DNA of 64,000 nt, taken from sequence record ON287376.1; one strand, written 5' to 3'. Within the stretch, counting starts at the first letter, position 1. Each line of letters starts with the position of its first letter. Made by a program: the position numbers and the translations under genes. Shown piece after piece: positions 1-15,541 of this stretch. Under the pieces are notes generated by a model. It ran no database searches and had not been told where the DNA came from. It was given only the letters and a program-made list of their open reading frames with translations.

Positions 1-26
1 ATTTAGTAATAACTGTAACTAATGGA

Positions 27-542
27 ATGAACAGTTTAACAGATACATTACGAGTAGAGCTGGATAACTTTCCAGTAGCTCGTATCAAGGGATGGGTAAA
101 GATCATCAGTGAACGATATGGATTAGCTACTCTACCTACGCTGTACTACATGGACTGGGGGAAGGTGGTTGATGACATTAACGAACACCCTCATACCGTT
201 CTCAATGTAGGAGGAGACAGCAGTATTACCTGGGAAGCGGGTAATACATGGCCAAAGGGTGTAAACTCTGATGGTACGTTATCGGCTGGACGTACCATTA
301 AGTTCCATCCAACCACATGGTCAGAAATCATGTTTGCTACTCAGGATAACTTTTTAGAAGTAGAAGGTTTCATTCTGGTAGATAAAACGGGTGCTGTATA
401 TGAGTACGGTATCTTAAATGAACGTAATTTCATTAACCTGGGTGGATTTGATTTCCTCTCTAGCGATTACAAAGCGTTTGCCTACCATCGTAGAGAAGGC
501 GTAGTCACCCTGATCGAACGCCATAGTCCACCAACCGCTTAA
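27..542 (+). CDS. Hypothetical protein (171 aa)
   Basis: ORF track; first of three co-oriented, closely spaced ORFs; no recognisable motif. Confidence 0.75.
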   Translation: MNSLTDTLRVELDNFPVARIKGWVKIISERYGLATLPTLYYMDWGKVVDDINEHPHTVLNVGGDSSITWEAGNTWPKGVNSDGTLSAGRTIKFHPTTWSEIMFATQDNFLEVEGFILVDKTGAVYEYGILNERNFINLGGFDFLSSDYKAFAYHRREGVVTLIERHSPPTA

Positions 543-559
543 TTAATTAGGAGCACGAC

Positions 560-850
560 ATGATTGAAGTAACTTGTGATTCAGTAGCAGATAACTTATT
601 CTCTGTAACATTGAGTAAGCCATCTGAGGGCAGGCTTAATTCTAGCTACTCTCGTAAAGTTTCTTTCCGTATCGATACGAAAGTATACTCCATTCGCTTA
701 GCGAGCATCTCTGCCGTTCACCAGGCTGCACGCAACGGCGGTGAAGGGGTGATTACTATCATCACCCAATCGGCGAAGTACACGTTCAACTACCGTAAGG
801 GCGGCCAGGAAGCAATCAATGAGTTCTTGGCTGCATGGGAACAGATCTGA
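560..850 (+). CDS. Small protein, possible bacterial PH-like (bPH) domain
   Basis: AGGAG RBS before ATG; pattern SIRLASISAVHQ...GVITIITQSAKYTF plus C-terminal helix resembles bPH domains (by eye). Confidence 0.7.
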   Translation: MIEVTCDSVADNLFSVTLSKPSEGRLNSSYSRKVSFRIDTKVYSIRLASISAVHQAARNGGEGVITIITQSAKYTFNYRKGGQEAINEFLAAWEQI

Positions 851-1104
851 TGGAATACTCCATTATCAACCCTAATGGGAAACTCCCCGTACTACGCATC
901 AAAGTCAGTGGTGTTTTGAGTCATTACTCGATTATGGGAATTACGGGTATCAGCTACGCCAAAATGGCCATGCCGTTAGGTACTGTACAAGTGACGATTG
1001 ACCGGGAAGGAACAAGTAATATCTTCCAGGTTCCGGCAAAAGATGTCCCATTAGTAGATGAGATCGTTACTCTCTGGGTAAATATCATCAACGGTATCAA
1101 GTAA
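850..1104 (+). CDS. Small protein (84 aa), possible bPH-like paralog of the upstream gene
   Basis: ATG overlaps upstream TGA (TGATG coupling); YSIMGITGISY...GTVQVTIDREGTSNIFQV plus helix pattern. Confidence 0.7.
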   Translation: MEYSIINPNGKLPVLRIKVSGVLSHYSIMGITGISYAKMAMPLGTVQVTIDREGTSNIFQVPAKDVPLVDEIVTLWVNIINGIK

Positions 1105-1119
1105 GTAATTTGTCATAAA

Positions 1120-1145
1120 CCCACCTACCCTAACCGGTAGGTGGG
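1120..1145 (+). terminator. Intergenic hairpin/terminator
   Basis: CCCACCTACC-CTAACC-GGTAGGTGGG, 10-bp perfect stem just after stop codon, preceded by CATA. Confidence 0.7.
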
Positions 1146-1227
1146 AGTTGTATTATCCTAAATCTTTTTCTTTTGTCCTTACGTTAAAATGTACGCATGT
1201 TTGACTTAATGTAGACATTAGGGAATT

Positions 1228-2142
1228 ATGAGGGAGTTTCGGAAAATGGCCGGGACAAAGAAATTAATCATTACACCAACCTTCAAACTAAAAAAGTTAT
1301 TGAAGGATATGGTAGGCTCAGAGCCAGGTTTTAATCTAGTCTGGCAAATGGCCGTAGACTACATGGTGAAATGCATCTTGTCTGGTGCCCGTAAAGAAAC
1401 GCTTCCCGAATTCATGCAGGAAGCATACGGCGAATTAGATGCTTCCACGAGTTATTACTTCGCAGATCTGTTGGGATTCAAATTGGTTGAGTCCTCGTAC
1501 AGAAAAGATTCATTTACATTCTCCTTGGCATTATCTGGGGAATCTAAAAACGTCCCTGATCTTTCTAAGGTTACGAAGATCTCTCGTACACCTTACGATA
1601 ACGGATGGATGAATGGCGTAGTTTGGTTCCGACCTGTACACTGCGCATTTTACTACGTTAAAGCAACCCGTAACCCATTAGCTGACTTTGTACAGGAAAG
1701 TGCATATCTGGTCGGCAAACACCACAAGGTGAATATCTACCAAAAGATATTTGATGCGGGTGATGATAAACGTATTAAAGGGATTTACTTTGAAGTAGCC
1801 GATCGGAAGGAATCCGAAGATGTAGGTAGTCAGATGTCTAACTACGTCAGAAACAATAGAGGGATCTACGAAGAGGGAGAAAGACGTGTCGGGGAATTAT
1901 TACCTGACCGTAAAGATCAACCCAATACCCAACACCAGGGGAATGGGAAGAAGCCTGACTTTGGTATCGGGAGAAATCAGGTATGTGTAAAAGGTAAGGA
2001 ATACCGTAATGTAGTTTCGTACCACAAAGAGACTCGTTTACCGATGCCGCAGATCTACCGTCGATTGAATTCCCGTCATCCTGAATGGATTGATTGGTTC
2101 TTCATCGGCTCTCCTAAAGATACTAGAAGGAAGTCAGTGTGA
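1228..2142 (+). CDS. Degenerate (probably inactive) GIY-YIG endonuclease-like protein with C-terminal NUMOD1-like HTH
   Basis: 46-aa gapless match by eye to the GIY-YIG core of 12732..14078, with catalytic positions substituted; C-terminal VCVKGKEYRNVV...IYRRLNSRHPEWIDWF module; true start may be ATG 1246 (AGGGAG RBS). Confidence 0.6.
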   Translation: MREFRKMAGTKKLIITPTFKLKKLLKDMVGSEPGFNLVWQMAVDYMVKCILSGARKETLPEFMQEAYGELDASTSYYFADLLGFKLVESSYRKDSFTFSLALSGESKNVPDLSKVTKISRTPYDNGWMNGVVWFRPVHCAFYYVKATRNPLADFVQESAYLVGKHHKVNIYQKIFDAGDDKRIKGIYFEVADRKESEDVGSQMSNYVRNNRGIYEEGERRVGELLPDRKDQPNTQHQGNGKKPDFGIGRNQVCVKGKEYRNVVSYHKETRLPMPQIYRRLNSRHPEWIDWFFIGSPKDTRRKSV

Positions 2143-2393
2143 AAGTATTGGAAAGTAAAGAAGGACACGGTGTTTTCCTTATCCAAACGTACAAGTGCGT
2201 TTTCGATGCAATCAAGTGGTTCGCAGACCAACTAGGTTCAGAAGACCTAGATGAAAGCATCTTAGAGAAATCACTGACCGGGATCGCTATAGAGACAGGG
2301 GTAAGCTTGTTTCCTGCGATCTTAGAAGTCATGGAGACGGACAAGGTAATGTCCTACCGAGTCATTAATCTCGATGGTCTTAAACTTAGCTAG
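2139..2393 (+). CDS. Hypothetical protein (84 aa)
   Basis: GTG start overlapping the upstream TGA, AGGAAG upstream; followed by hairpin. Confidence 0.65.
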   Translation: MKVLESKEGHGVFLIQTYKCVFDAIKWFADQLGSEDLDESILEKSLTGIAIETGVSLFPAILEVMETDKVMSYRVINLDGLKLS

Positions 2394-2395
2394 TC

Positions 2396-2430
2396 CATAA
2401 GCCGGCTGGGGAAACCTGGCCGGTCTATGT
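2396..2430 (+). terminator. Hairpin cassette flanked by CATA and CTATGT
   Basis: CATAA-GCCGGCTGGG-GAAA-CCTGGCCGGT-CTATGT. Confidence 0.65.
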
Positions 2431-2461
2431 TGTTTATGTACAATTAAGAGGAAACACCACC

Positions 2462-2620
2462 ATGCCTAGTACCAGTAAGAAACAAGAGCAATTCATGGCC
2501 GCCGCTGCCCACGACAAAGAGTTCGCTGAAGAAGCAGCCATTCCCCAGAAGGTTGCTAAAGAATTCCATAACGCCGATAAGCGTAAGAAGAACAAGAAAG
2601 CGATCTTGGCAAAACGTTGA
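2462..2620 (+). CDS. Small protein (52 aa, MPSTSKKQEQFMAAAAHDKEF...), absent from the ORF track
   Basis: AAGAGGA RBS; my translation MPSTSKKQEQFMAAAAHDKEFAEEAAIPQKVAKEFHNADKRKKNKKAILAKR*; resembles a small hypothetical family I recall from many phages. Confidence 0.8.
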   Translation: MPSTSKKQEQFMAAAAHDKEFAEEAAIPQKVAKEFHNADKRKKNKKAILAKR

Positions 2621-2766
2621 TTTAGATCTTTTTTTACGCAACAAGTTTAAGTATGTAGAAGCTGCATCAAGTAATCATTTAGTTCAATTAACTCCAGGGT
2701 CGATTGTCGGTAACTAAGTGAGATTCAGCTACAAGCGGGGATGGATCCCCACTAAGTATTGGAGAG

Positions 2767-2863
2767 CTTTAAGGGTACGATCTCAATCGTCCGGGTTGTG
2801 GAACAACTTCCGCACACTAGTGCGTTGGTTTAGGGTTCGACTCCCTACCGGAATGCCTTAAAG
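2767..2863 (+). ncRNA. tRNA-like cloverleaf embedded in a longer stem
   Basis: T arm TAGGG-TTCGACT-CCCTA (2831-2847); closing TCCGG/CCGGA; arms GTTGT-GGA-ACAAC and CGCAC-ACTA-GTGCG; outer stem CTTTAAGG/CCTTAAAG. Confidence 0.6.
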
Positions 2864-2934
2864 GTAGCGCATGATAAATGCGAGCAACTAACACGAGGCG
2901 ACATTACGCGCCTACTCCAATCAAAACGAATTAC

Positions 2935-3017
2935 GGGGGAGTTCCAGAGTGGTCAAATGGAGCAGACTGTAAATCTGTTGTCTTCGGACTTCGGTGGTTC
3001 GAATCCGCCCTCCCCCA
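2935..3017 (+). tRNA. trnY: tRNA-Tyr(GTA), canonical class II, CCA not encoded
   Basis: GGGGGAG/CTCCCCC acceptor, GCAGA-CTGTAAA-TCTGT anticodon arm, GTC-TTCG-GAC variable arm, GGTGG-TTCGAAT-CCGCC T arm, A73. Confidence 0.95.
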
Positions 3018-3025
3018 AGAATAAT

Positions 3026-3121
3026 GCGACGATTAGCTCAGTTGGATAGAGCGCGGTTATTGCCCCCTGGGCAAACATCGGAAACCGAGGCCCCGTGTTC
3101 AAATCACGGATCTGTCGCCCA
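3026..3121 (+). tRNA. Atypical tRNA: Arg-like D arm, 24-nt anticodon loop, G-1:C73, bulged acceptor, CCA encoded
   Basis: GCGAC-GAT/ATC-T-GTCGC + CCA; D arm GCTC-AGTTGGATA-GAGC; CGGTT/AACCG stem; T arm CCGTG-TTCAAAT-CACGG. Confidence 0.75.
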
Positions 3122-3127
3122 AACAAT

Positions 3128-3206
3128 GAACCGAGTAGCTCAACTGAATAGAGCACCGTCCTGCTAAGACGGAGGTTAGAGGTTTGAATCCTTTCTCTGG
3201 TTCCCA
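3128..3206 (+). tRNA. Atypical tRNA with GCT (Ser) anticodon on a class I body; G-1:C73, bulged acceptor, CCA encoded
   Basis: GAACC-GAG/CTC-T-GGTTC + CCA; CCGTC-CTGCTAA-GACGG anticodon arm; 5-nt variable loop; T arm AGAGG-TTTGAAT-CCTTT. Confidence 0.8.
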
Positions 3207-3212
3207 AACAAC

Positions 3213-3376
3213 GACACTGATCTCAAGAAGATCGGCAGCCTTACCCAACCGTGTCGCGGCGATCGCCAGCAATCGGTATTTAGTGCACGGTACGTAGACA
3301 AGCCTTTGAGCGAAGTTCCGCGTCCCGAGCCGCCGGCAGCCCATAAGCCTCAGTGAAATTCTGAGGGGTGTCACCA
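3213..3376 (+). ncRNA. 164-nt RNA with tRNA-like acceptor/T domain (6+6 bp) ending ACCA
   Basis: GACACT/GGTGTC + ACCA; CCTCAG-TGAAATT-CTGAGG; GATC-TCAAGAA-GATC 5' hairpin; internal ACCGTG/CACGGT helix. Confidence 0.6.
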
Positions 3377-3381
3377 AAGAT

Positions 3382-3445
3382 GTCCTCATTGCAGAGGGAG
3401 GTTGATTGTAGTCAGCCTGTTGTGAAACTAATCTGCAGTGGGGAC
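3382..3445 (+). ncRNA. Structured RNA element (14-bp closing helix with inner hairpin)
   Basis: GTCCTCATTGCAGA/TCTGCAGTGGGGAC, 14 bp including G-U pairs; inner GGTTGAT-TGTA-GTCAGCC. Confidence 0.5.
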
Positions 3446-3466
3446 GCCTTCCCTTTCTAAAGTTTT

Positions 3467-3552
3467 ATCGAGATAGTCTACTTAAACCTAGTGAGGAATT
3501 CGACGGCGGATACGTCCGTAAGACTGCGTAGGTTCGATCCCTACTCTCGATC
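3467..3552 (+). ncRNA. tRNA-like RNA with 23-nt D loop and 4-nt anticodon loop
   Basis: Perfect ATCGAGA/TCTCGAT acceptor; T8 A9; GTC/GAC D stem; GCGGA-TACG-TCCGT; GTAGG-TTCGATC-CCTAC T arm. Confidence 0.7.
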
Positions 3553-3568
3553 CGATTTAAAAGAACAA

Positions 3569-3696
3569 TGACGCCTGCACGTAAAAAGCAAACTGCGCCA
3601 GCTGGGCGCGGTGGGGGCTAAGTGCCAGCAACTGTTGTGGCGAGATCGCGGCAACAGCACCGGAAAGCCAGGTGCGATTCCTGGGGGCGTCACCCA
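3569..3696 (+). ncRNA. 128-nt tRNA-like RNA (8-bp acceptor + 5-bp T stem), ends C-CCA
   Basis: TGACGCCT/GGGCGTCA + CCCA; CCAGG-TGCGATT-CCTGG; internal hairpins ACTGCGCC/GGCGCGGT and CTGTTG...CAACAG. Confidence 0.65.
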
Positions 3697-3698
3697 AT

Positions 3699-3776
3699 TA
3701 GGTACGTAAGTCTCAAGTGGCCGCATTCATCTGCCCGCTGCCTAAAGACTTTGTGGAATGGATTCCGCGTACCTAA
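3699..3776 (+). ncRNA. tRNA-sized structured RNA with acceptor/T-like stack
   Basis: TAGGTAC/GTACCTA 7 bp abutting GTGGA-ATGGAT-TCCGC; AAGTCT/AGACTT inner helix. Confidence 0.45.
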
Positions 3777-3811
3777 AAACCAGTAAGTTAAACTAATAGG
3801 ACGATTCTACG

Positions 3812-4321
3812 ATGACTATCCTTAATCGCGATATGATCATGCAAGAACTCTTAAACTCAATAGATCCTGATGCAGGCCCATGTCTTGGGCTTAGCAGGGA
3901 AAAAGAGTTAGCCGAAATTTATACGCTAGGATTCAAGGCACCTCGCCAAACGGGGTCTACGTATTGGCTTATCGAAAAACTCATTGAGGATCGTAACTCA
4001 ATTGTAATTTTGATTAATAGCGACTTTAAAGAACACTTCCTAGCGGATGTTGAGAAATACCCTAAAATCATTTTCGACAAGTGTCTTAAATATGGACCAT
4101 CTGTTGAACGGGGTATTCTTAATGGCGACAAAGACAATATAATCGATCGTTGCTTCACTGCCAGGGAATTCTTAAACGCTGACCTAGAACGTCACCGCTA
4201 CGCCACATCGGTCTTCTTTGATGGCGCGTCGACGATTGCTAGTAAGATTAATCTTAATGCGTATTACCGAAAGTTGGCCAAAGAAGTAAAAGGTTATCCG
4301 GTTACTTGGCTGATTAACTAA
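3812..4321 (+). CDS. Degenerate P-loop (terminase-ATPase-like) domain protein
   Basis: AGGA RBS; APRQTGST resembles PRQxGKT Walker A with K>S; SVFFDGA resembles a Walker B lacking Glu. Confidence 0.6.
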   Translation: MTILNRDMIMQELLNSIDPDAGPCLGLSREKELAEIYTLGFKAPRQTGSTYWLIEKLIEDRNSIVILINSDFKEHFLADVEKYPKIIFDKCLKYGPSVERGILNGDKDNIIDRCFTAREFLNADLERHRYATSVFFDGASTIASKINLNAYYRKLAKEVKGYPVTWLIN

Positions 4322-4413
4322 AGAACACTTGATGTGCTGGTAAAGGTTTAGTCACCTTTTTTAAGATCGTCCGCTAATGATTGATACTAGCGCATCTTTT
4401 TTATTGAAGAATC

Positions 4414-4638
4414 CCGCCGATCGGGTAGCGTACGTCTGGCGTAGTCATTACTCTAATTGAGTGGGGCTACGAGGGGTTTACCAGTCGATCGGTGGTACCA
4501 AACTCTGAGCAGGTTGCAGCCGGCTGGAGTAAATAGGGGACTGCGAGTCCCCAGGTGCATAAAGGCCCAGAAATGGCGCCCGGCACAAGACGCAGCGCGT
4601 CGGTATCGAGAGGGGCTTCGGCCCCTCTCTTTATTTTC
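4414..4638 (+). ncRNA. Candidate orphan structured RNA ending in an intrinsic terminator
   Basis: CCGCCGATCG/CGATCGGTGG 10-bp helix enclosing the GTAGTC/GGCTAC hairpin; GGGGACT-GCG-AGTCCCC; GACGC-AGC-GCGTC; no RBS-supported ORF. Confidence 0.5.
4608..4637 (+). terminator. Rho-independent terminator
   Basis: GAGAGGGGC-TTCG-GCCCCTCTC followed by TTTATTTT. Confidence 0.85.
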
Positions 4639-4655
4639 TTCAACGGGAAACTGTT

Positions 4656-5132
4656 ATGAAATTCATACTGGCATTGAATCCTAAAGATCCGGCAATTAAA
4701 GGTTACGAATCAGATCTTCTTAAGATGATCCAGATTATGGATAAACGAGAAGCTACTTACTGGAAAGAGTCAGCTAACTTAGATATCCTTAGTCGTGAGA
4801 TGGAGTGTAAAACCTTAGAGGAACGTTGGGTAGACGATACTCAAATACTAATGCTCCTTGTGAGGGGTAATCCTGTAGGTTTCGTTGAGTACACGACCGC
4901 AGTAGTTAACGCTAGTTCTAAGTGGCTTTCTATATGTTATCTGTACGTACAACGAGAGTACAGAGGGTTTGGATATGGATCTGCACTAGTTGATCAAGTA
5001 AGGAACTTTGCCAAGATCCAACAAGTAGATCAATTGTCACTTTCAGTCAAGTCAAGAAATAAACGAGCCATTAAGTTTTACAAGAGATACGGTTTCTCGG
5101 AACAGACTAAGTACTTCTGTATGAAACCTTAA
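4656..5132 (+). CDS. GNAT family acetyltransferase
   Basis: LYVQREYRGFGYGSAL acetyl-CoA motif A; SVKSRNKRAIKFYKRYGF motif B. Confidence 0.9.
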   Translation: MKFILALNPKDPAIKGYESDLLKMIQIMDKREATYWKESANLDILSREMECKTLEERWVDDTQILMLLVRGNPVGFVEYTTAVVNASSKWLSICYLYVQREYRGFGYGSALVDQVRNFAKIQQVDQLSLSVKSRNKRAIKFYKRYGFSEQTKYFCMKP

Positions 5133-5146
5133 TTAGGAGAGTAACG

Positions 5147-5347
5147 ATGATTATCTTCCCTGGGATTACTGCGGTAGAGAAAAGTCAACTGAGCGTCGGT
5201 ACGCTCATTAATTATACCGGGCTAGGACTCAAGTTTAAATGTGATGTCTGCGAAGAGAAGTTAACCGTAAGCTATTACAAAGACAGTAAACCCGAAGATC
5301 GGATTATCTGTTCAAAGTGCAGCGGTTCTTCTTTCAGCACCTACTAA
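5147..5347 (+). CDS. Small zinc-ribbon protein
   Basis: AGGAG RBS; CDVC...CSKC double CxxC. Confidence 0.75.
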   Translation: MIIFPGITAVEKSQLSVGTLINYTGLGLKFKCDVCEEKLTVSYYKDSKPEDRIICSKCSGSSFSTY

Positions 5348-5350
5348 GCA

Positions 5351-5390
5351 AACATAGGGAGAGGGAAAACCCTCTCCCTCTATAATGTTT
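5351..5390. terminator. Bidirectional terminator between convergent genes
   Basis: AACATA-GGGAGAGGG-AAAA-CCCTCTCCC-TCTATAATGTT. Confidence 0.8.
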
Positions 5391-7314
5391 AAACGCCGTC
5401 AGGAATATTGAGCATGGAGTTAACCTGATCCGTAGACCACTCGAGAATATCGAATGTACGGGAGTTAATGTTCTCCTGGTCACCGGTATCTAAGACGAAC
5501 TCAAATACGAACGTAGGAGCGTCCTGATCAATCCTGTCAATACGACCTATCGCTTGTTCCATGTTGTAGCTACGGAACGGCACGTTCAATGCCAGGATGG
5601 TATTTGCCATTGTCATCGGTACGGCACTGGAAAGAGATTGGAATGTAGTAACCATCGCCCGCTCTTTACCCGTTTCGAACTTCTTGACTTCACTATCAGC
5701 AGTACCTTCAGAACTACCGTGAACTACCAGTGGTTGAATGCCTTTACCTTTAAGATATTTGGCACACTCATCAACTACCTTAACGTACGAAGTAAAGACG
5801 ACAGTTTTCTTCTCAGCCTCCTCGATATACTTCTCGATTTTAGCATGACGCATAACTGCCTCAACTGCTTCCTCACGCCGTTTGGATACAAGTGACCCAA
5901 GACACTCCCCTCTGACTTTCAATTCAACATACTTGATTACAGAGAGATAGGATCGCAGTTTCTTCCTACGTTCATTATCCAAAGCAGGTAAAAGAACATT
6001 CTTCTCGTACTTATTAACAAATACGATAGTGTCCCGGATTTTAGGATAATCAGTAGTCTTAACTATCACGTTGAACATCTTACGATAAAGCGCGAACTGT
6101 TGCTTCTGCTGAGGACTCTTCAACGCCTTCTCAAAGATGGCAAGGGACTCGTTGTAATACTTCAGAGCATTACCTCGCTGACCTTCCCAGTACTTCAAAC
6201 GATCCTTGATAAACTTCTCCATATCTTTCTTGAGAGTAGTCAACAAGAAAGGAGTTGGGTCGGGTATCTTAACAGGGACACGTTCGATCTTAGGTTCGGT
6301 TTTAACAACCTCAGCTTTGAAGACGATATTACCCAGACGATGACTAATGATGTCGAATACCTTATTACTGGACTTACCGTATAACTTACGGAAAGCCTCT
6401 GCAACATCATCGTTCATGAGCGGATCGATTGTCCTTAGCATGGTGATCGCTTCAGTACCGTATGCCTTAAGCGGGGTTGCCGATGCCCAAATAGTCGACA
6501 TGGGTTCGATGATCTTCCATGCTTCGTACATGATGTTATTTCGACCACTTGTCTCTTCGTTCAACGTGTGGGATTCATCGAGTATTAGCGTGACTTTCTT
6601 ACCACGGAACTTACTCGCAATCTCTTTGAAATAACGTAGGTCTTCTACGTGGAAGATCAGGAAAGGAGGGGGATTTCCTTTTAACTCTTTGTCCCGATCG
6701 TAGATCCAGTACTTAGGAGGATTACGAAAATCTTCCTTCATCGACTTTTCCCAAACACGATAGACCGCACGTTTGAGCGTTATGATAATCGTGAAGTCTG
6801 ACCCTAACATCTGGGACAGAGCCAGAGACGAATAGGTCTTACCTGTACCAGTTTTCATAGCCAGCGTATAGCCATGAAGACGGAATCTCGGCACTACGTT
6901 ATCGTATTTATCAAAGAACTCAACCTGGTGTTCCTTAGGCGTGAATTTGAACAACGATAACTTAGAACGATTAAGGATTGGATCGTGTTCTTCTTGAGTA
7001 CTCTTCAGCCAGGTGTTTTCTAACATGGCGTTTTTAACGGACACCAGAGATCGTTTGGAGGTCTTGTTTAACTTAGGGAACTCCAATAACTTGTCGACAA
7101 TGTAAACGAACTCTACTGCGAAGAAACTATAAAACTCAATCTCGTAGGGAGAGACTTTAATGAACATCGATTTGACGATCCTGTTTGTCCGCCACAGAGA
7201 ATAGATGTCCGCAAACATGTTCTTGGTTTTCAAAGCCGAAACAGTAATCTTCCCATTACTCTCCACGACCTTAACCGAACCAATTAAAGAACGAATTGGG
7301 TTAAGAATGCCCAT
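5389..7314 (-). CDS. Superfamily 2 (DEXH) helicase
   Basis: AMKTGTGKT Walker A; LILDESH motif II; ASATP motif III; EQAIGRIDRIDQ motif VI. Confidence 0.9.
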   Translation of the reverse strand: MGILNPIRSLIGSVKVVESNGKITVSALKTKNMFADIYSLWRTNRIVKSMFIKVSPYEIEFYSFFAVEFVYIVDKLLEFPKLNKTSKRSLVSVKNAMLENTWLKSTQEEHDPILNRSKLSLFKFTPKEHQVEFFDKYDNVVPRFRLHGYTLAMKTGTGKTYSSLALSQMLGSDFTIIITLKRAVYRVWEKSMKEDFRNPPKYWIYDRDKELKGNPPPFLIFHVEDLRYFKEIASKFRGKKVTLILDESHTLNEETSGRNNIMYEAWKIIEPMSTIWASATPLKAYGTEAITMLRTIDPLMNDDVAEAFRKLYGKSSNKVFDIISHRLGNIVFKAEVVKTEPKIERVPVKIPDPTPFLLTTLKKDMEKFIKDRLKYWEGQRGNALKYYNESLAIFEKALKSPQQKQQFALYRKMFNVIVKTTDYPKIRDTIVFVNKYEKNVLLPALDNERRKKLRSYLSVIKYVELKVRGECLGSLVSKRREEAVEAVMRHAKIEKYIEEAEKKTVVFTSYVKVVDECAKYLKGKGIQPLVVHGSSEGTADSEVKKFETGKERAMVTTFQSLSSAVPMTMANTILALNVPFRSYNMEQAIGRIDRIDQDAPTFVFEFVLDTGDQENINSRTFDILEWSTDQVNSMLNIPDGV

Positions 7315-12651: not shown

Positions 12652-12731
12652 TCTAATGTAGGGGATTAGCTACCCCCTATTAAAAAATCTTAACCTTGGC
12701 TTTCTTAGCCTCCTTTGCAAAGGATTTTTAA

Positions 12732-14078
12732 ATGAGTAAAGTAATACTGGCGGAAGATTCCACCCTAATCAATAAAAGTAGTTTACTCCTGGGCCAACCA
12801 AGCCCAGGGGTTTATGACCTTCTGATGACGATTGCGATCAACGCACTTCGTAAGCCTGAGGTCTTATTACCTGGCGCCCTGAAGGACGTCACCGAGCTGT
12901 TCAATACCGAGCGATGGGGTAAGGAGGGGTCTATTCCTCTTGCCTCCCTGCCGCCTTCTATAACGTCTGTATCGGGAGCTGAATTCTCAATCAACACCAA
13001 AGAAACGATTTTCGAGGATGGTGATTACGAGAAGATCGTGGATATAATTCCGATTGACGACTTGATGGGAGATTTCGGATTCAACCGATCCGAGGGCGCT
13101 TTCGCTGGCGTCTATATCTTGACGTTCTCGAATAAACCGATCTCCTATATTGGATCGAGTGTAAATGTATTCAAACGTCTAAGGGAACATCGTAATAACC
13201 TGGCTGGCGATAGGCACTACAACAAGCGACTTCAGACCTTCTATAACCTGCACAAAGATGACCCTGTAGTTAGGATCAAAGTACAGGTTATTCGTACCAC
13301 TGAAACCCAGACTCCTTTCTGGTTAGAGAATGAGACTTTGAGTTACGTTAAACGTAAACAAGCCGTGTTCAATATCGGAGATACTGCTGAACTGCCTAAG
13401 CTGGGCGTTTCGGTAAGTGAGGAGACTAGGAGTAGGATGTCTGAGTCTGCCCTAGGTAAGAAACTCTCTAAGGTAACGCGGGATAAAATGGCGGCGGTTA
13501 GAAAAGGAAAGGTTAACTCTGAAGAACATGTGTTGAAAACAACTAAAGCCCTTAGTAAGGAAATAATGGGCGACGGGATTAAGTATCCGTCTGCATCTGC
13601 AGCGGGTCGTATTCTCGGCATCAACCAGTCTACCATCACACGTAGATTGAGTAGTAAAGGTTATCCTGGATGGTACCTAATTGGTTCTGAGCATGACCCT
13701 GATGTTAAGTCAGGTAAAATAGAACAGACCACCGAAAAGAACGCAGATAACTTAGGGTATCGTATTGACGGTAAAATATACTTTACCTCAACCGAAGCCG
13801 GTAATGAGCTAGGGTACTCTTCATCTACTGTTAAACGTAGAGCAGATGATCCCCGGTTCCCAACTTGGGAGAGGATTGAAATAAATGATCCAGCTAGATT
13901 AGTTAGATCAACCTCTAAAGCCGTGGTAGTCGACGGAGAACACTTCTTGTCCTTACGTATAGCGGCAGATTCACTAGGTGTTCACCCAAGGACAATTATC
14001 GATTGGATGAACCATCCAGTTAACCATCCCAACACGTATTATGTTGGATCGGATAAAGATCCTTTAATTAAGAAGTAG
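12732..14078 (+). CDS. Free-standing GIY-YIG homing endonuclease with NUMOD3 and three NUMOD1-like repeats
   Basis: GVYIL...YIGSS...KRLREH core; SEETRSRMSES/SKVTRDKM NUMOD3-like repeats; three DG.x.(F/Y).S...A...LG HTH modules. Confidence 0.9.
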   Translation: MSKVILAEDSTLINKSSLLLGQPSPGVYDLLMTIAINALRKPEVLLPGALKDVTELFNTERWGKEGSIPLASLPPSITSVSGAEFSINTKETIFEDGDYEKIVDIIPIDDLMGDFGFNRSEGAFAGVYILTFSNKPISYIGSSVNVFKRLREHRNNLAGDRHYNKRLQTFYNLHKDDPVVRIKVQVIRTTETQTPFWLENETLSYVKRKQAVFNIGDTAELPKLGVSVSEETRSRMSESALGKKLSKVTRDKMAAVRKGKVNSEEHVLKTTKALSKEIMGDGIKYPSASAAGRILGINQSTITRRLSSKGYPGWYLIGSEHDPDVKSGKIEQTTEKNADNLGYRIDGKIYFTSTEAGNELGYSSSTVKRRADDPRFPTWERIEINDPARLVRSTSKAVVVDGEHFLSLRIAADSLGVHPRTIIDWMNHPVNHPNTYYVGSDKDPLIKK

Positions 14079-14111
14079 AACATAGCCAGAGTACCCTTCG
14101 GGGTACTCTGG
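14079..14111. terminator. Bidirectional terminator between convergent genes
   Basis: AACATAG-CCAGAGTACCC-TTCG-GGGTACTCTGG. Confidence 0.8.
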
Positions 14112-14152
14112 ACTACTCTTCACGGTTACTTATTTTTTTTGGCTAGACGGGC

Positions 14153-15541
14153 CTAGAATAGGTCACGTCGCCAATTCCATTTCTCTGTCTTAACTGCCTT
14201 CCCGTGCATTGCGCTCATCATCAAACTCATGAAAACGTTACCGGTCTCGGTCGCTAATGAGCTCAGAGACTGCCTAGAATCGACGTAGCGCTCACCAAGG
14301 CACTTCACGCAGAAGTTACCATCAACTGTATTACAGAACTGCGGAGAACGCATTACAGTAGGTTTTCCGTAAAACTGCTCAATGTTTGTTGGAGTAACCT
14401 GAACCATCTTACCATTAACAAGTGCGTATGCCCAGAGATAGCCGGAAGCATTATCTGCATCGATGATGTGCTCGACTCCCAAGGTAGAACCGCAATCGTC
14501 TTCTGCAATGTTGGTGTTCAGGAAGAAGCGAGACAAGAACTTCGCAGCCTCACCACCCAGCGCTGTCAAGAAGCCACGGCTGTAAGAACCATCGATAAGT
14601 GAGTTAGCCATCTGCGGTAAACGTTTGATGTCCCATTGCTCTGCCAGGGAACGATCGATAACCGTGATCTTGTTGGGATCGTTAAAGTCACGTTCGATAC
14701 CGTGCATTACGTAGGACTTCATGCGCGTGATGTCAAAGTCTTTACCGTTCTTCAAGAACCCTTTCTCCGGGTCTTGATCCTGGAAGGCTTTATCCATATC
14801 TTTCAGCTCACCCATGATCTTCGCTACGACAGTTGCATCGTGGAGTTGATCCTTGTATTGCTCCAATAACTCGTTACGACGCTTGATGATATTTTTATCG
14901 GTCAAGATCGTGTAAGGAGTAGCAGCAGGGGCAGCCAATTGACACCAGCCAGTTACCGAGTAGGCAGCTTGGTAATATTTCTTTTCCAGATCGTCGGTGT
15001 AGATCTTGGTAGCGTCACGCTCTTCCCCTTGTTCAGGAGTAGAAGTAAGCAACTCAGCGATTTTAGATTCGATAGCACCGATCTTGATTTGACCAGCCAT
15101 GAAAGGAATCGTAGCACCGAAGCTGTGGCAGAGTATAGTTTGGTTCACTACCACGTTACCGTACCAGGTAGTCAGTTCCCGATCTACGTTTACCAGGTCG
15201 CCTTTGTTCAGTGTGATTTCATCTTTGAACCGGAAGAACGGATAGTTTAACCGGACTTCTTGGAGAGGTTCCCAGGCTTGCGTATCACGATCGAAGAAGA
15301 CCACGCGGTCATCGTCTTTGAAGAGTTGATACGGATAGCGTTCGAACGCATAGCGATCAGGTTCGTTGTCGTAGACAATCTTTCCGTAAGGATCCTGAAT
15401 CATTAGCTCTTTAGCCGTGATGAGGTTTTCTACCTCAGGACGATTAGGGAGCGCAACCATGGCGAAACATTCTACCATCCATTCCTTGTATTGGTAGGCA
15501 CCCGCACGGAGCGCCTTAAGGAAGTAATCTCGCTTAAGCAT
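14153..15541 (-). CDS. Split RNA polymerase beta-prime C-terminal subunit (virion RNAP; phiKZ gp80-like)
   Basis: IAEDDCGS; MRSPQFC...FCVKCLG zinc site; MSAMHG trigger-loop-like motif; start moved to ATG 15541, coupled to upstream stop. Confidence 0.88.
   Translation of the reverse strand: MLKRDYFLKALRAGAYQYKEWMVECFAMVALPNRPEVENLITAKELMIQDPYGKIVYDNEPDRYAFERYPYQLFKDDDRVVFFDRDTQAWEPLQEVRLNYPFFRFKDEITLNKGDLVNVDRELTTWYGNVVVNQTILCHSFGATIPFMAGQIKIGAIESKIAELLTSTPEQGEERDATKIYTDDLEKKYYQAAYSVTGWCQLAAPAATPYTILTDKNIIKRRNELLEQYKDQLHDATVVAKIMGELKDMDKAFQDQDPEKGFLKNGKDFDITRMKSYVMHGIERDFNDPNKITVIDRSLAEQWDIKRLPQMANSLIDGSYSRGFLTALGGEAAKFLSRFFLNTNIAEDDCGSTLGVEHIIDADNASGYLWAYALVNGKMVQVTPTNIEQFYGKPTVMRSPQFCNTVDGNFCVKCLGERYVDSRQSLSSLATETGNVFMSLMMSAMHGKAVKTEKWNWRRDLF

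Follow-up and report, generated by a model that had tools for sequence, protein, structure and literature searches.

KODAMA_00040, a predicted nuclease-dead relative of I-TevI conserved in a clade of jumbo phages

Among described proteins, I-TevI, a homing endonuclease of the GIY-YIG type encoded in the td intron of phage T4, has the fold closest to the one predicted for KODAMA_00040, a gene of the Serratia jumbo phage vB_SmaM-Kodama (ON287376.1, 275 kb, Moabitevirus) that is annotated as a hypothetical protein starting at ATG 1246. The window analyzed here is the first 64,000 nucleotides (nt) of this record, such that window and record coordinates are the same; its first 6 kb match record positions 1-6000 at 100% identity and are approximately 98% identical to phages Moabite, 2050HW, Haymo, BUCT660 and Yaphecito and to Pectobacterium phage ParM-25. 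Structures are available for the catalytic domain (PDB 1ln0 and 1mk0) and the DNA-binding domain (1i3j) of I-TevI. The enzyme is also a transcriptional autorepressor, and its DNA-binding domain alone represses its own promoter (PMC2988022). Relative to I-TevI, the KODAMA_00040 protein lacks equivalents of Tyr6, Gly19, Arg27, His31, Glu75 and Asn90 as well as the zinc finger, but carries an extra domain of about 115 amino acids (aa) in front. Unlike I-TevI, it is not intron-encoded, is fixed in the genome and is missed by the Pfam GIY-YIG and I-TevI_DNA-bd models.

Other endonucleases and their derivatives offer further comparisons. SegB of T4 is a free-standing GIY-YIG endonuclease gene within a tRNA gene cluster (PMC2988022; PMC13096335, in part). 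KODAMA_00040 is likewise a free-standing GIY-YIG gene at a phage tRNA cluster, and SegB, likened here by description, is a plausible model for its ancestor; however, SegB is an active and mobile nuclease, whereas the KODAMA_00040 family appears inactive and is vertically inherited. CapR, a repressor of the Vibrio cholerae PLE satellite, is derived from a homing-endonuclease DNA-binding domain (PMC8096241). Like CapR, KODAMA_00040 would be an endonuclease-derived protein kept for sequence-specific DNA binding and transcriptional repression, a role that in its case is predicted. CapR corresponds to no more than the N-terminal DNA-binding domain of T5orf172-type proteins, its nuclease domain having been lost, whereas KODAMA_00040 retains a dead nuclease fold and has a C-terminal helix-turn-helix (HTH) of the I-TevI type as its predicted DNA-binding module. 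Domesticated LAGLIDADG proteins, e.g. WhiA regulators and intron maturases, also keep their folds without catalysis for nucleic-acid binding. They belong to a different nuclease superfamily and to cellular or organellar hosts, and serve as an analogy only. Domestication of homing endonucleases is therefore already known from I-TevI autorepression, CapR and LAGLIDADG derivatives, and the locus described here presents no new class of biology. The novelty lies in a conserved protein of viruses in which a dead GIY-YIG fold persists together with a new N-terminal domain, as a variant of this theme. A literature search found no paper on the KODAMA_00040 family, and every record seen annotates its members as hypothetical, with none naming the family.

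Homology, fold and active site

KODAMA_00040 has three parts, i.e. an N-terminal domain, a degenerate GIY-YIG domain and, after a linker, a C-terminal HTH; their limits are given in Table 1, and residues are numbered from the longer open reading frame (ORF) that begins at the in-frame ATG 1228. The original prediction, which was made from the DNA alone, described the protein as a catalytically dead paralog of the GIY-YIG endonuclease encoded 11 kb away (12732-14078) on the strength of a gapless alignment of 46 aa. This alignment joins residues 130-175 of the 1228-2142 ORF to residues 126-171 of the 12732-14078 ORF with 8 identities and a BLOSUM62 sum of 11, the best of 259 ORF windows against the GIY-YIG segment. 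Comparison of profiles with hhalign recovers the same residues. An alignment of the KODAMA_00040 family (5 sequences) matches an alignment of the neighbour's family (7 sequences) over 191 columns (106-298 vs 98-327) with a probability of 91%, an E value of 1.1e-6 and a score of 54.3, and places GVVWF on GVYIL in the predicted register. The GIY-YIG pieces by themselves match with a probability of 68-71% (E ~4e-5) and a score of 31.7, compared with 10.5 +/- 1.9 for column shuffles, none of which reached 31.7 in 100 trials. The GIY-YIG and HTH pieces each lie about 10 standard deviations above column shuffles, while cross-domain control pairs have probabilities of at most 10% throughout.

The family alignment was also compared with a second one, made from eight unrelated GIY-YIG homing endonucleases of phages; it excludes the 12732-14078 family and includes the crAss-like protein cr109, whose two in-frame stops under translation table 11 are written as '*'. 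The match covers both core and HTH with a probability of 94.6%, an E value of 6.6e-8 and a score of 59.0. As judged from these profiles, KODAMA_00040 is homologous to the GIY-YIG superfamily, and the homology is to I-TevI-type endonucleases generally. Because unrelated endonucleases match at least as well as the neighbouring enzyme does (59.0 vs 54.3), the profiles indicate no specific tie to the 12732-14078 gene; the N-terminal domains of the two proteins are also not detectably related, and a specific paralogy is not supported.

Structure prediction agrees with the profiles. AlphaFold2 (AF2) was given a 5-sequence alignment that includes the distant relatives P0008 and P0009 and contains no canonical GIY-YIG member. 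Residues 130-215 of the resulting model have a predicted local distance difference test score (pLDDT) of 77-92 and are arranged as strand-strand-helix-helix-strand-helix, forming the three-stranded sheet with flanking helices of the GIY-YIG superfamily. An earlier model from 4 close sequences was confident only for the N-terminal domain, and its central domain (pLDDT <50) had no fold match. Residues 128-214 of the model superpose nearly without gaps on I-TevI residues 2-88. A Foldseek search with the model retrieves 1mk0 with a probability of 0.96 and a template-modelling (TM) score of 0.64, though with an E value of 0.14, and the top matches in BFVD are nearly all phage GIY-YIG endonucleases. 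The model thus indicates that KODAMA_00040 carries a GIY-YIG fold closest to that of I-TevI, and three independent lines agree on this fold, two from hhalign against separate targets and one from the AF2 model as compared by both VIA and Foldseek. Absence of such a fold had been named in advance as the outcome that would speak against the original prediction; the fold is present.

The catalytic residues of this fold appear to have been lost. Active-site positions were mapped through I-TevI by the hhalign register and by the structural register, and KODAMA_00040 has the substitutions Y6>V132, G19>K145, R27>D153, H31>E157, E75>G200/S201 and N90>E215/216, with GIY changed to GVV and YIG to YVK; the changes of these two motifs and of the Arg, Glu and Asn had been predicted. 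Across seven family members, V/I/L occupy the Y6 column, K/L/D/E the G19 column and D/S/A the R27 column, while the E75 column contains G/N/K/S in the hhalign register or S/A/H/Q/K in the structural register. The catalytic residue is therefore absent from all four columns in 7/7 members, and no acidic residue is conserved beside the Glu position. The second Tyr (Y143) is mostly kept, and the family retains G130, P136, R148, P150, Q156, L161, H166 and Q172. Since the Glu and Arg are lost in every member, including lineages that are only 22% identical, an old inactivation is the simplest reading, and we infer that the KODAMA_00040 protein no longer cuts DNA.

Alternatively, the protein could still be a nuclease with a non-canonical active site built from the conserved Arg148, Gln156, His166 and Tyr143. 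In 7/7 sequences, several polar residues close to the former active site do not vary, and divergent GIY-YIG relatives without the canonical motif, the T5orf172 proteins of ICP1, have been proposed to be active (PMC8096241). However, neither the position of the metal-binding Glu nor its immediate neighbours hold a conserved acidic residue, and no member keeps the general-base Tyr or the Arg. Leu161, His166 and Gln172 look like residues of the fold because I-TevI keeps their equivalents (Leu35, His40 and Gln46), and the gene has a fixed, syntenic place instead of the patchy distribution of a mobile endonuclease gene. Retained cleavage by such a site is very unlikely, and loss of nuclease activity is the preferred reading.

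The linker and HTH complete a layout like that of I-TevI, in which hhalign finds a GIY-YIG core, a variable linker and a C-terminal HTH, here preceded by the extra N-terminal domain. The linker varies across the family in both length and sequence. No zinc finger was found in residues 215-250, which contain a single Cys and no Cys/His cluster, and Pfam gave no NUMOD3 match. The NUMOD1-like HTH that had been predicted for the C-terminus is supported at the profile level, matching the first HTH of the 12732-14078 family with a probability of 88-91% and a score of 31.6 (8.9 +/- 2.3 for column shuffles, 0/100 of which reach it); it also aligns with the C-terminal HTH of the unrelated GIY-YIG endonucleases.

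For the N-terminal domain, no relatives were detected, and a Protein Atlas query with the N-terminal domains of both KODAMA_00040 and the neighbouring enzyme gave nothing usable. It had been predicted that the two proteins share an unusual extension of about 120 aa with the motif G..PG..L....A....K. This candidate was rejected. The motif is absent as written from both proteins, in which only versions with variable spacers occur, and its PG is conserved in neither family. The N-terminal domains of the two (first 118 residues of the enzyme) have no profile similarity (hhalign probability 0.3-0.4%), and addition of the segment of about 20 aa that precedes the GIY motif leaves the hhalign score unraised.

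Several results weigh against the account given above. In shuffling trials, 8.7% of shuffled ORFs scored as high as the 46-aa alignment, which is not significant alone; BLASTP of KODAMA_00040 against the 12732-14078 enzyme gave no significant match; and Pfam, PHROGs and NCBIfam assigned the protein to no family, with no match to Pfam PF01541 at E<=10. Taken alone, the 46-aa alignment is therefore a guess. In PADLOC, the sole match for KODAMA_00040 and its relatives was a weak 'HEase' at residues 231-290 of P0008, and sequence searches of PDB with the protein and its profile gave chance matches only. The alignments used for hhalign are shallow, with 5-7 sequences and an effective number of sequences (Neff) of about 2.4. 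The HTH region is modelled at low confidence (pLDDT 30-55), so it is called by profile similarity only. None of 24 listed runs was of RNA from an infection. Finally, GIY-YIG active sites tolerate variation, and with the invariant Arg148, Gln156 and His166 near the former active site, some residual or altered chemistry may persist there.

Selection, gene order and the upstream block

KODAMA_00040 belongs to a small family. By tblastn, the protein is 99-100% identical in nine Moabitevirus-type records, 79% identical in phage Totoro and approximately 22% identical over its full length in 13 records of Klebsiella jumbo phages, including FBKp24 (Maaswegvirus) and KpLz-2_45 (Siatvirus). A profile search of 1.84 billion representatives together with word-index searches returned only five real relatives, adding P0007 (54%) and P0008 and P0009 (~23%); P0010 was rejected as a repeat-protein artefact, and a scan of IMG/VR revealed no additional loci. 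The family is confined to the jumbo-phage clade of Moabitevirus, Maaswegvirus, Siatvirus and relatives, with one copy per genome. The gene order is homologue, small ORF, tRNA array, GNAT acetyltransferase and, on the other strand, SNF2 helicase, and it is kept in all three genera and in two metagenomic contigs. The behaviour of a mobile element is not seen, as there is one copy at the same syntenic place in every genome of the three genera and the distribution is not patchy.

The reading frame is intact and full-length in every genome seen, including the lineages with only 22% identity. Between Kodama and Totoro, the proportion of synonymous differences (pS) is 0.72, which is saturated, and that of nonsynonymous differences (pN) is 0.13, giving pN/pS of ~0.19 and a ratio of nonsynonymous to synonymous substitution rates (dN/dS) of ~0.06. 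The HTH segment, with a pN of 0.02, is the most constrained part of the gene. KODAMA_00040 is under strong purifying selection, and it is a fixed, selected gene that is neither mobile nor decaying. The description of the protein as domesticated and nuclease-dead fits these observations, with the fold present, the catalytic Tyr, Arg and Glu replaced, and the gene selected and stably inherited, while loss of activity is judged from the sequence. That the gene is a decaying, functionless remnant of a homing endonuclease, or that its GIY-YIG resemblance is a modelling artefact, is extremely improbable. Degenerate endonuclease genes are common in phages, and single-sequence and hidden Markov model searches see no domain in this one; but the intact frames, the low pN/pS at saturated synonymous sites and the agreement of profiles and model on the fold all oppose both versions of this explanation.

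The start codon of KODAMA_00040 is more likely ATG 1246 than ATG 1228, because every homologue starts at the Met equivalent to ATG 1246 and the equivalent of 1228 is out of frame in the distant contig L004; ATG 1228 also falls within a -10-like hexamer. The gene probably is co-transcribed with the small ORF KODAMA_00050, in a two-gene unit between the two terminator-like hairpins of Table 1, the first of which is present, with changes, in Totoro and contig L004. A small ORF of 84-90 aa is kept in Moabitevirus-like lineages, including Totoro and L004. In the Klebsiella-phage clade it is replaced by an ORF of 51-61 aa that resembles a zinc ribbon (CxxC...CxxC; L002 8891-9061, L005 6903-7058 and L006 3113-3298). 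The downstream small ORF was considered as a conserved partner of KODAMA_00040 and rejected, since the Moabitevirus-like and Klebsiella-phage versions have no detectable similarity.

Immediately upstream of the gene lies a block that is almost invariant in Kodama, Totoro and L004. It holds the ribosome-binding site GAGGGAG as well as a sigma-70-like match, TTGACT-17-AATTAT, at 1201-1229. No exact match between the first 16 kb of the window and contig L004 is longer than the 55 nt at positions 1180-1234, which exceeds any inside the tRNA genes, although the KODAMA_00040 proteins of the two are only 56% identical. The block is unique within the window. It was rejected as an RNA element, having no significant fold (z -1.1) and no Rfam match, and as a general phage promoter motif, given its uniqueness and the lack of enrichment of the 10-mer TTAATGTAGA. 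A piece of the block, TTA[A/G]TGTAGA, is found again in FBKp24 and KpLz-2_45, some 30 nt ahead of the start codon; chance sharing of a 10-mer is not unlikely. The block is read as a candidate promoter/operator specific to this gene; it could instead serve simply as a strong promoter of the usual kind, its leader being constrained, and not as an operator for the KODAMA_00040 protein, which counts against a regulatory role.

The tRNA array suggests another function, namely that the protein serves the adjacent tRNA or tRNA-like RNAs as a transcription regulator or as an RNA-binding or processing factor. Its place directly upstream of the array is kept in three genera and two metagenomic lineages. 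However, the whole region is collinear, including the GNAT and helicase genes, so that the synteny, though real, shows no functional link and the adjacency may be inheritance only. The second terminator-like hairpin separates the gene pair from the array, and a search for repeats joining the upstream block to the array found only short, chance-level matches. Moreover, tRNA clusters are landing sites of free-standing endonuclease genes, as for segB in T4 (PMC2988022). HNH endonuclease genes lie within the tRNA arrays of Totoro (L003 7769-8374) and KpLz-2_45 (L005 8935-9390), the former in the place of the Kodama tRNA-Tyr; homing-endonuclease genes have therefore landed repeatedly in the array in this clade, and the position of KODAMA_00040 beside it may be a relic of the homing site of its ancestor. 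A function in the array is accordingly considered quite unlikely, and a vertically inherited DNA-binding protein is preferred.

The array region itself has some further features. Within window positions 2400-3800, ARAGORN calls only tRNA-Tyr (2935-3017) and tRNA-Ser (3128-3206), and the non-coding sequence of this interval is 88-95% conserved relative to contig L004 in the blocks 2923-3017, 3023-3060, 3122-3211 and 3349-3560. FBKp24 has an annotated suppressor tRNA (anticodon TTA; L002 7608-7687) and a 38-aa ORF just upstream of the homologue, with no counterpart in Kodama; this suppressor tRNA is discussed in PMC8386662.

Table 1. Features of the KODAMA_00040 locus and the neighbouring endonuclease gene, in window coordinates.
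Feature	Position	Strand	Basis
Terminator-like hairpin that follows the previous gene and bounds the transcription unit upstream; 10-bp stem with 7 G-C pairs	1120..1145	+	Consensus scan
Ultra-conserved upstream block, candidate promoter/operator	1165..1237	+	Alignment of three lineages (Kodama, Totoro, L004)
KODAMA_00040 coding sequence, predicted nuclease-dead GIY-YIG/HTH protein, 298 aa from ATG 1246	1246..2142	+	Annotation, homologue starts
N-terminal domain, ~115 aa, strand-helix-helix-helix then three strands	1246..1593 (residues 7-122)	+	Confident AF2 model
Degenerate GIY-YIG domain	1609..1869 (residues 128-214)	+	hhalign, AF2 superposition on I-TevI
Polar/basic linker, one helix then disordered	1870..1977 (residues 215-250)	+	AF2 pLDDT <50 from residue 226
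Predicted I-TevI/NUMOD1-type HTH (residues 251-293) and short basic tail	1978..2139	+	Profile similarity
KODAMA_00050, 84-aa ORF overlapping the KODAMA_00040 stop codon by 4 nt	2139..2393	+	ON287376.1 annotation
Terminator-like hairpin closing the two-gene unit KODAMA_00040-KODAMA_00050	2401..2424	+	Consensus scan
Apparently intact I-TevI-like GIY-YIG homing endonuclease, 448 aa, 120-aa N-terminal extension, three HTH modules	12732..14078	+	Pfam, profile

The endonuclease gene at 12732-14078

The enzyme encoded 11 kb away is annotated as 'endonuclease' in ON287376.1 and belongs to the Moabite gp094 family. It matches GIY-YIG (4.4e-8), NUMOD1 and I-TevI_DNA-bd in Pfam as well as PHROG 314 'homing endonuclease', and its family profile matches I-TevI 1mk0 with an E value of 9e-12. 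The I-TevI residues Y6, Y17, G19, R27, H31, H40, E75 and N90 are kept as Y128, Y139, G141, R149, H153, H162, E199 and N214. KODAMA_00040 and this enzyme share a homologous GIY-YIG core and first HTH, and in both an extension of about 120 aa precedes the GIY motif. They differ in that the enzyme keeps its catalytic residues, has three HTH modules and NUMOD3, and carries an N-terminal extension not detectably related to that of KODAMA_00040. The enzyme is, furthermore, a recombination mosaic restricted to Moabitevirus and frameshifted in 2050HW, whereas KODAMA_00040 is 99-100% conserved in the same strains.

The mosaic is apparent in a comparison of Kodama with Moabite (L013, window 12676-14600). 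Across the first ~450 nt of the enzyme gene, which encode the N-terminal extension and the beginning of the GIY-YIG domain, identity is 96-100%, whereas it is only 58-76% over the remaining ~900 nt. The drop resembles a boundary left by recombination or co-conversion at the nuclease gene; recombination boundaries at such genes are described in PMC10448857 (in part). Other differences surround the gene. In its 3' part, the RNA-polymerase-alpha-like gene next to it (14153-15541, minus strand) falls in patches to 66-84% identity between Kodama and Moabite. Directly upstream of the enzyme is the 378-aa gene KODAMA_00200 (11483-12619), which is absent there in Moabite, an indel next to the nuclease gene; in Moabite, an 870-nt gene is followed directly by the endonuclease. 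In 2050HW, the orthologue is split by a frameshift inside the first HTH into fragments of 304 aa, holding the extension, GIY-YIG domain and linker, and 143 aa (L014 117-1031 and 1033-1464; G001:C1:273700-275300), a split that could reflect either a genuine disruption or an error in sequencing.

It had been suggested that KODAMA_00040 is a dominant-negative or 'immunity' partner of this enzyme, i.e. that it occupies the target site or binds the enzyme and so protects phage DNA. Both proteins combine GIY-YIG and an I-TevI-type HTH with about 120 aa of extra N-terminal domain, and all ten Moabitevirus records contain the two of them. In BFVD, the KODAMA_00040 model also has its best match in the 304-aa fragment of the 2050HW orthologue (280 columns, E 7.6e-4), but with a root-mean-square deviation of 19 A and a TM score of 0.29. 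A dedicated partnership is disfavoured because the KODAMA_00040 family occurs, in the same place, in Klebsiella jumbo phages, in which tblastn finds no relative of the enzyme; the full-length enzyme was found by tblastn in Moabitevirus only. The lack of profile similarity between the N-terminal domains and the equally good match to unrelated endonucleases also speak against it, as does the pace of change: between Kodama and Moabite, the nuclease and DNA-binding part of the enzyme falls to the nucleotide identity given above while the KODAMA_00040 protein remains 99.7% identical, which is unlike co-evolving partners. This partnership is highly improbable, and the suggestion was not upheld; KODAMA_00040 is better read as a DNA-binding protein in its own right.

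Proposed role and significance

The best overall explanation, which we consider reasonably probable as a whole, is that KODAMA_00040, which is inherited vertically, descends from a GIY-YIG homing endonuclease of the I-TevI type, has lost its nuclease activity and is kept as a DNA-binding protein. Its structural and evolutionary part is held with high confidence, whereas for the part that makes the protein a DNA-binding regulator, which draws on analogy, the chances appear evenly balanced. In this proposal, a family-specific N-terminal domain would be followed by a GIY-YIG fold from which the catalytic Tyr, Arg and Glu are missing, then by a linker that is flexible and basic, and by a single HTH of the I-TevI type. 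The HTH would provide sequence-specific DNA binding, and the dead nuclease domain and N-terminal domain would supply further contacts with DNA or protein. The most likely role would be that of a transcriptional regulator, possibly one that recognizes the invariant block in front of its own gene, in parallel to the repression by I-TevI of its promoter. Autoregulation of this kind is suggested tentatively, by analogy, and is rather doubtful.

A broader version would make the family a core regulator of the deep jumbo-phage clade of Moabitevirus, Maaswegvirus and Siatvirus, controlling a key stage of infection. For this, the HTH would have been recruited along with a dead GIY-YIG domain and a novel N-terminal domain. 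The protein might act on the ultra-conserved promoter of its own gene, on the neighbouring tRNA-like RNA array or on a protein that its N-terminal domain engages. This version is unlikely.

Homing endonucleases are usually viewed as selfish passengers that decay once fixed. If the favoured explanation is true, the whole chassis of an I-TevI-type enzyme, with its active site lost and a new N-terminal domain gained, has been kept under strong selection for longer than the three jumbo-phage genera have been separate. A gene annotated as 'hypothetical' is now assigned a fold and a predicted DNA-binding role. KODAMA_00040 would represent a natural nuclease-dead scaffold similar to I-TevI, with the 55-nt invariant block as its candidate operator. 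Should the less likely reading as a core regulator be true, no nuclease-dead GIY-YIG transcription factor would have been described from a virus before it.

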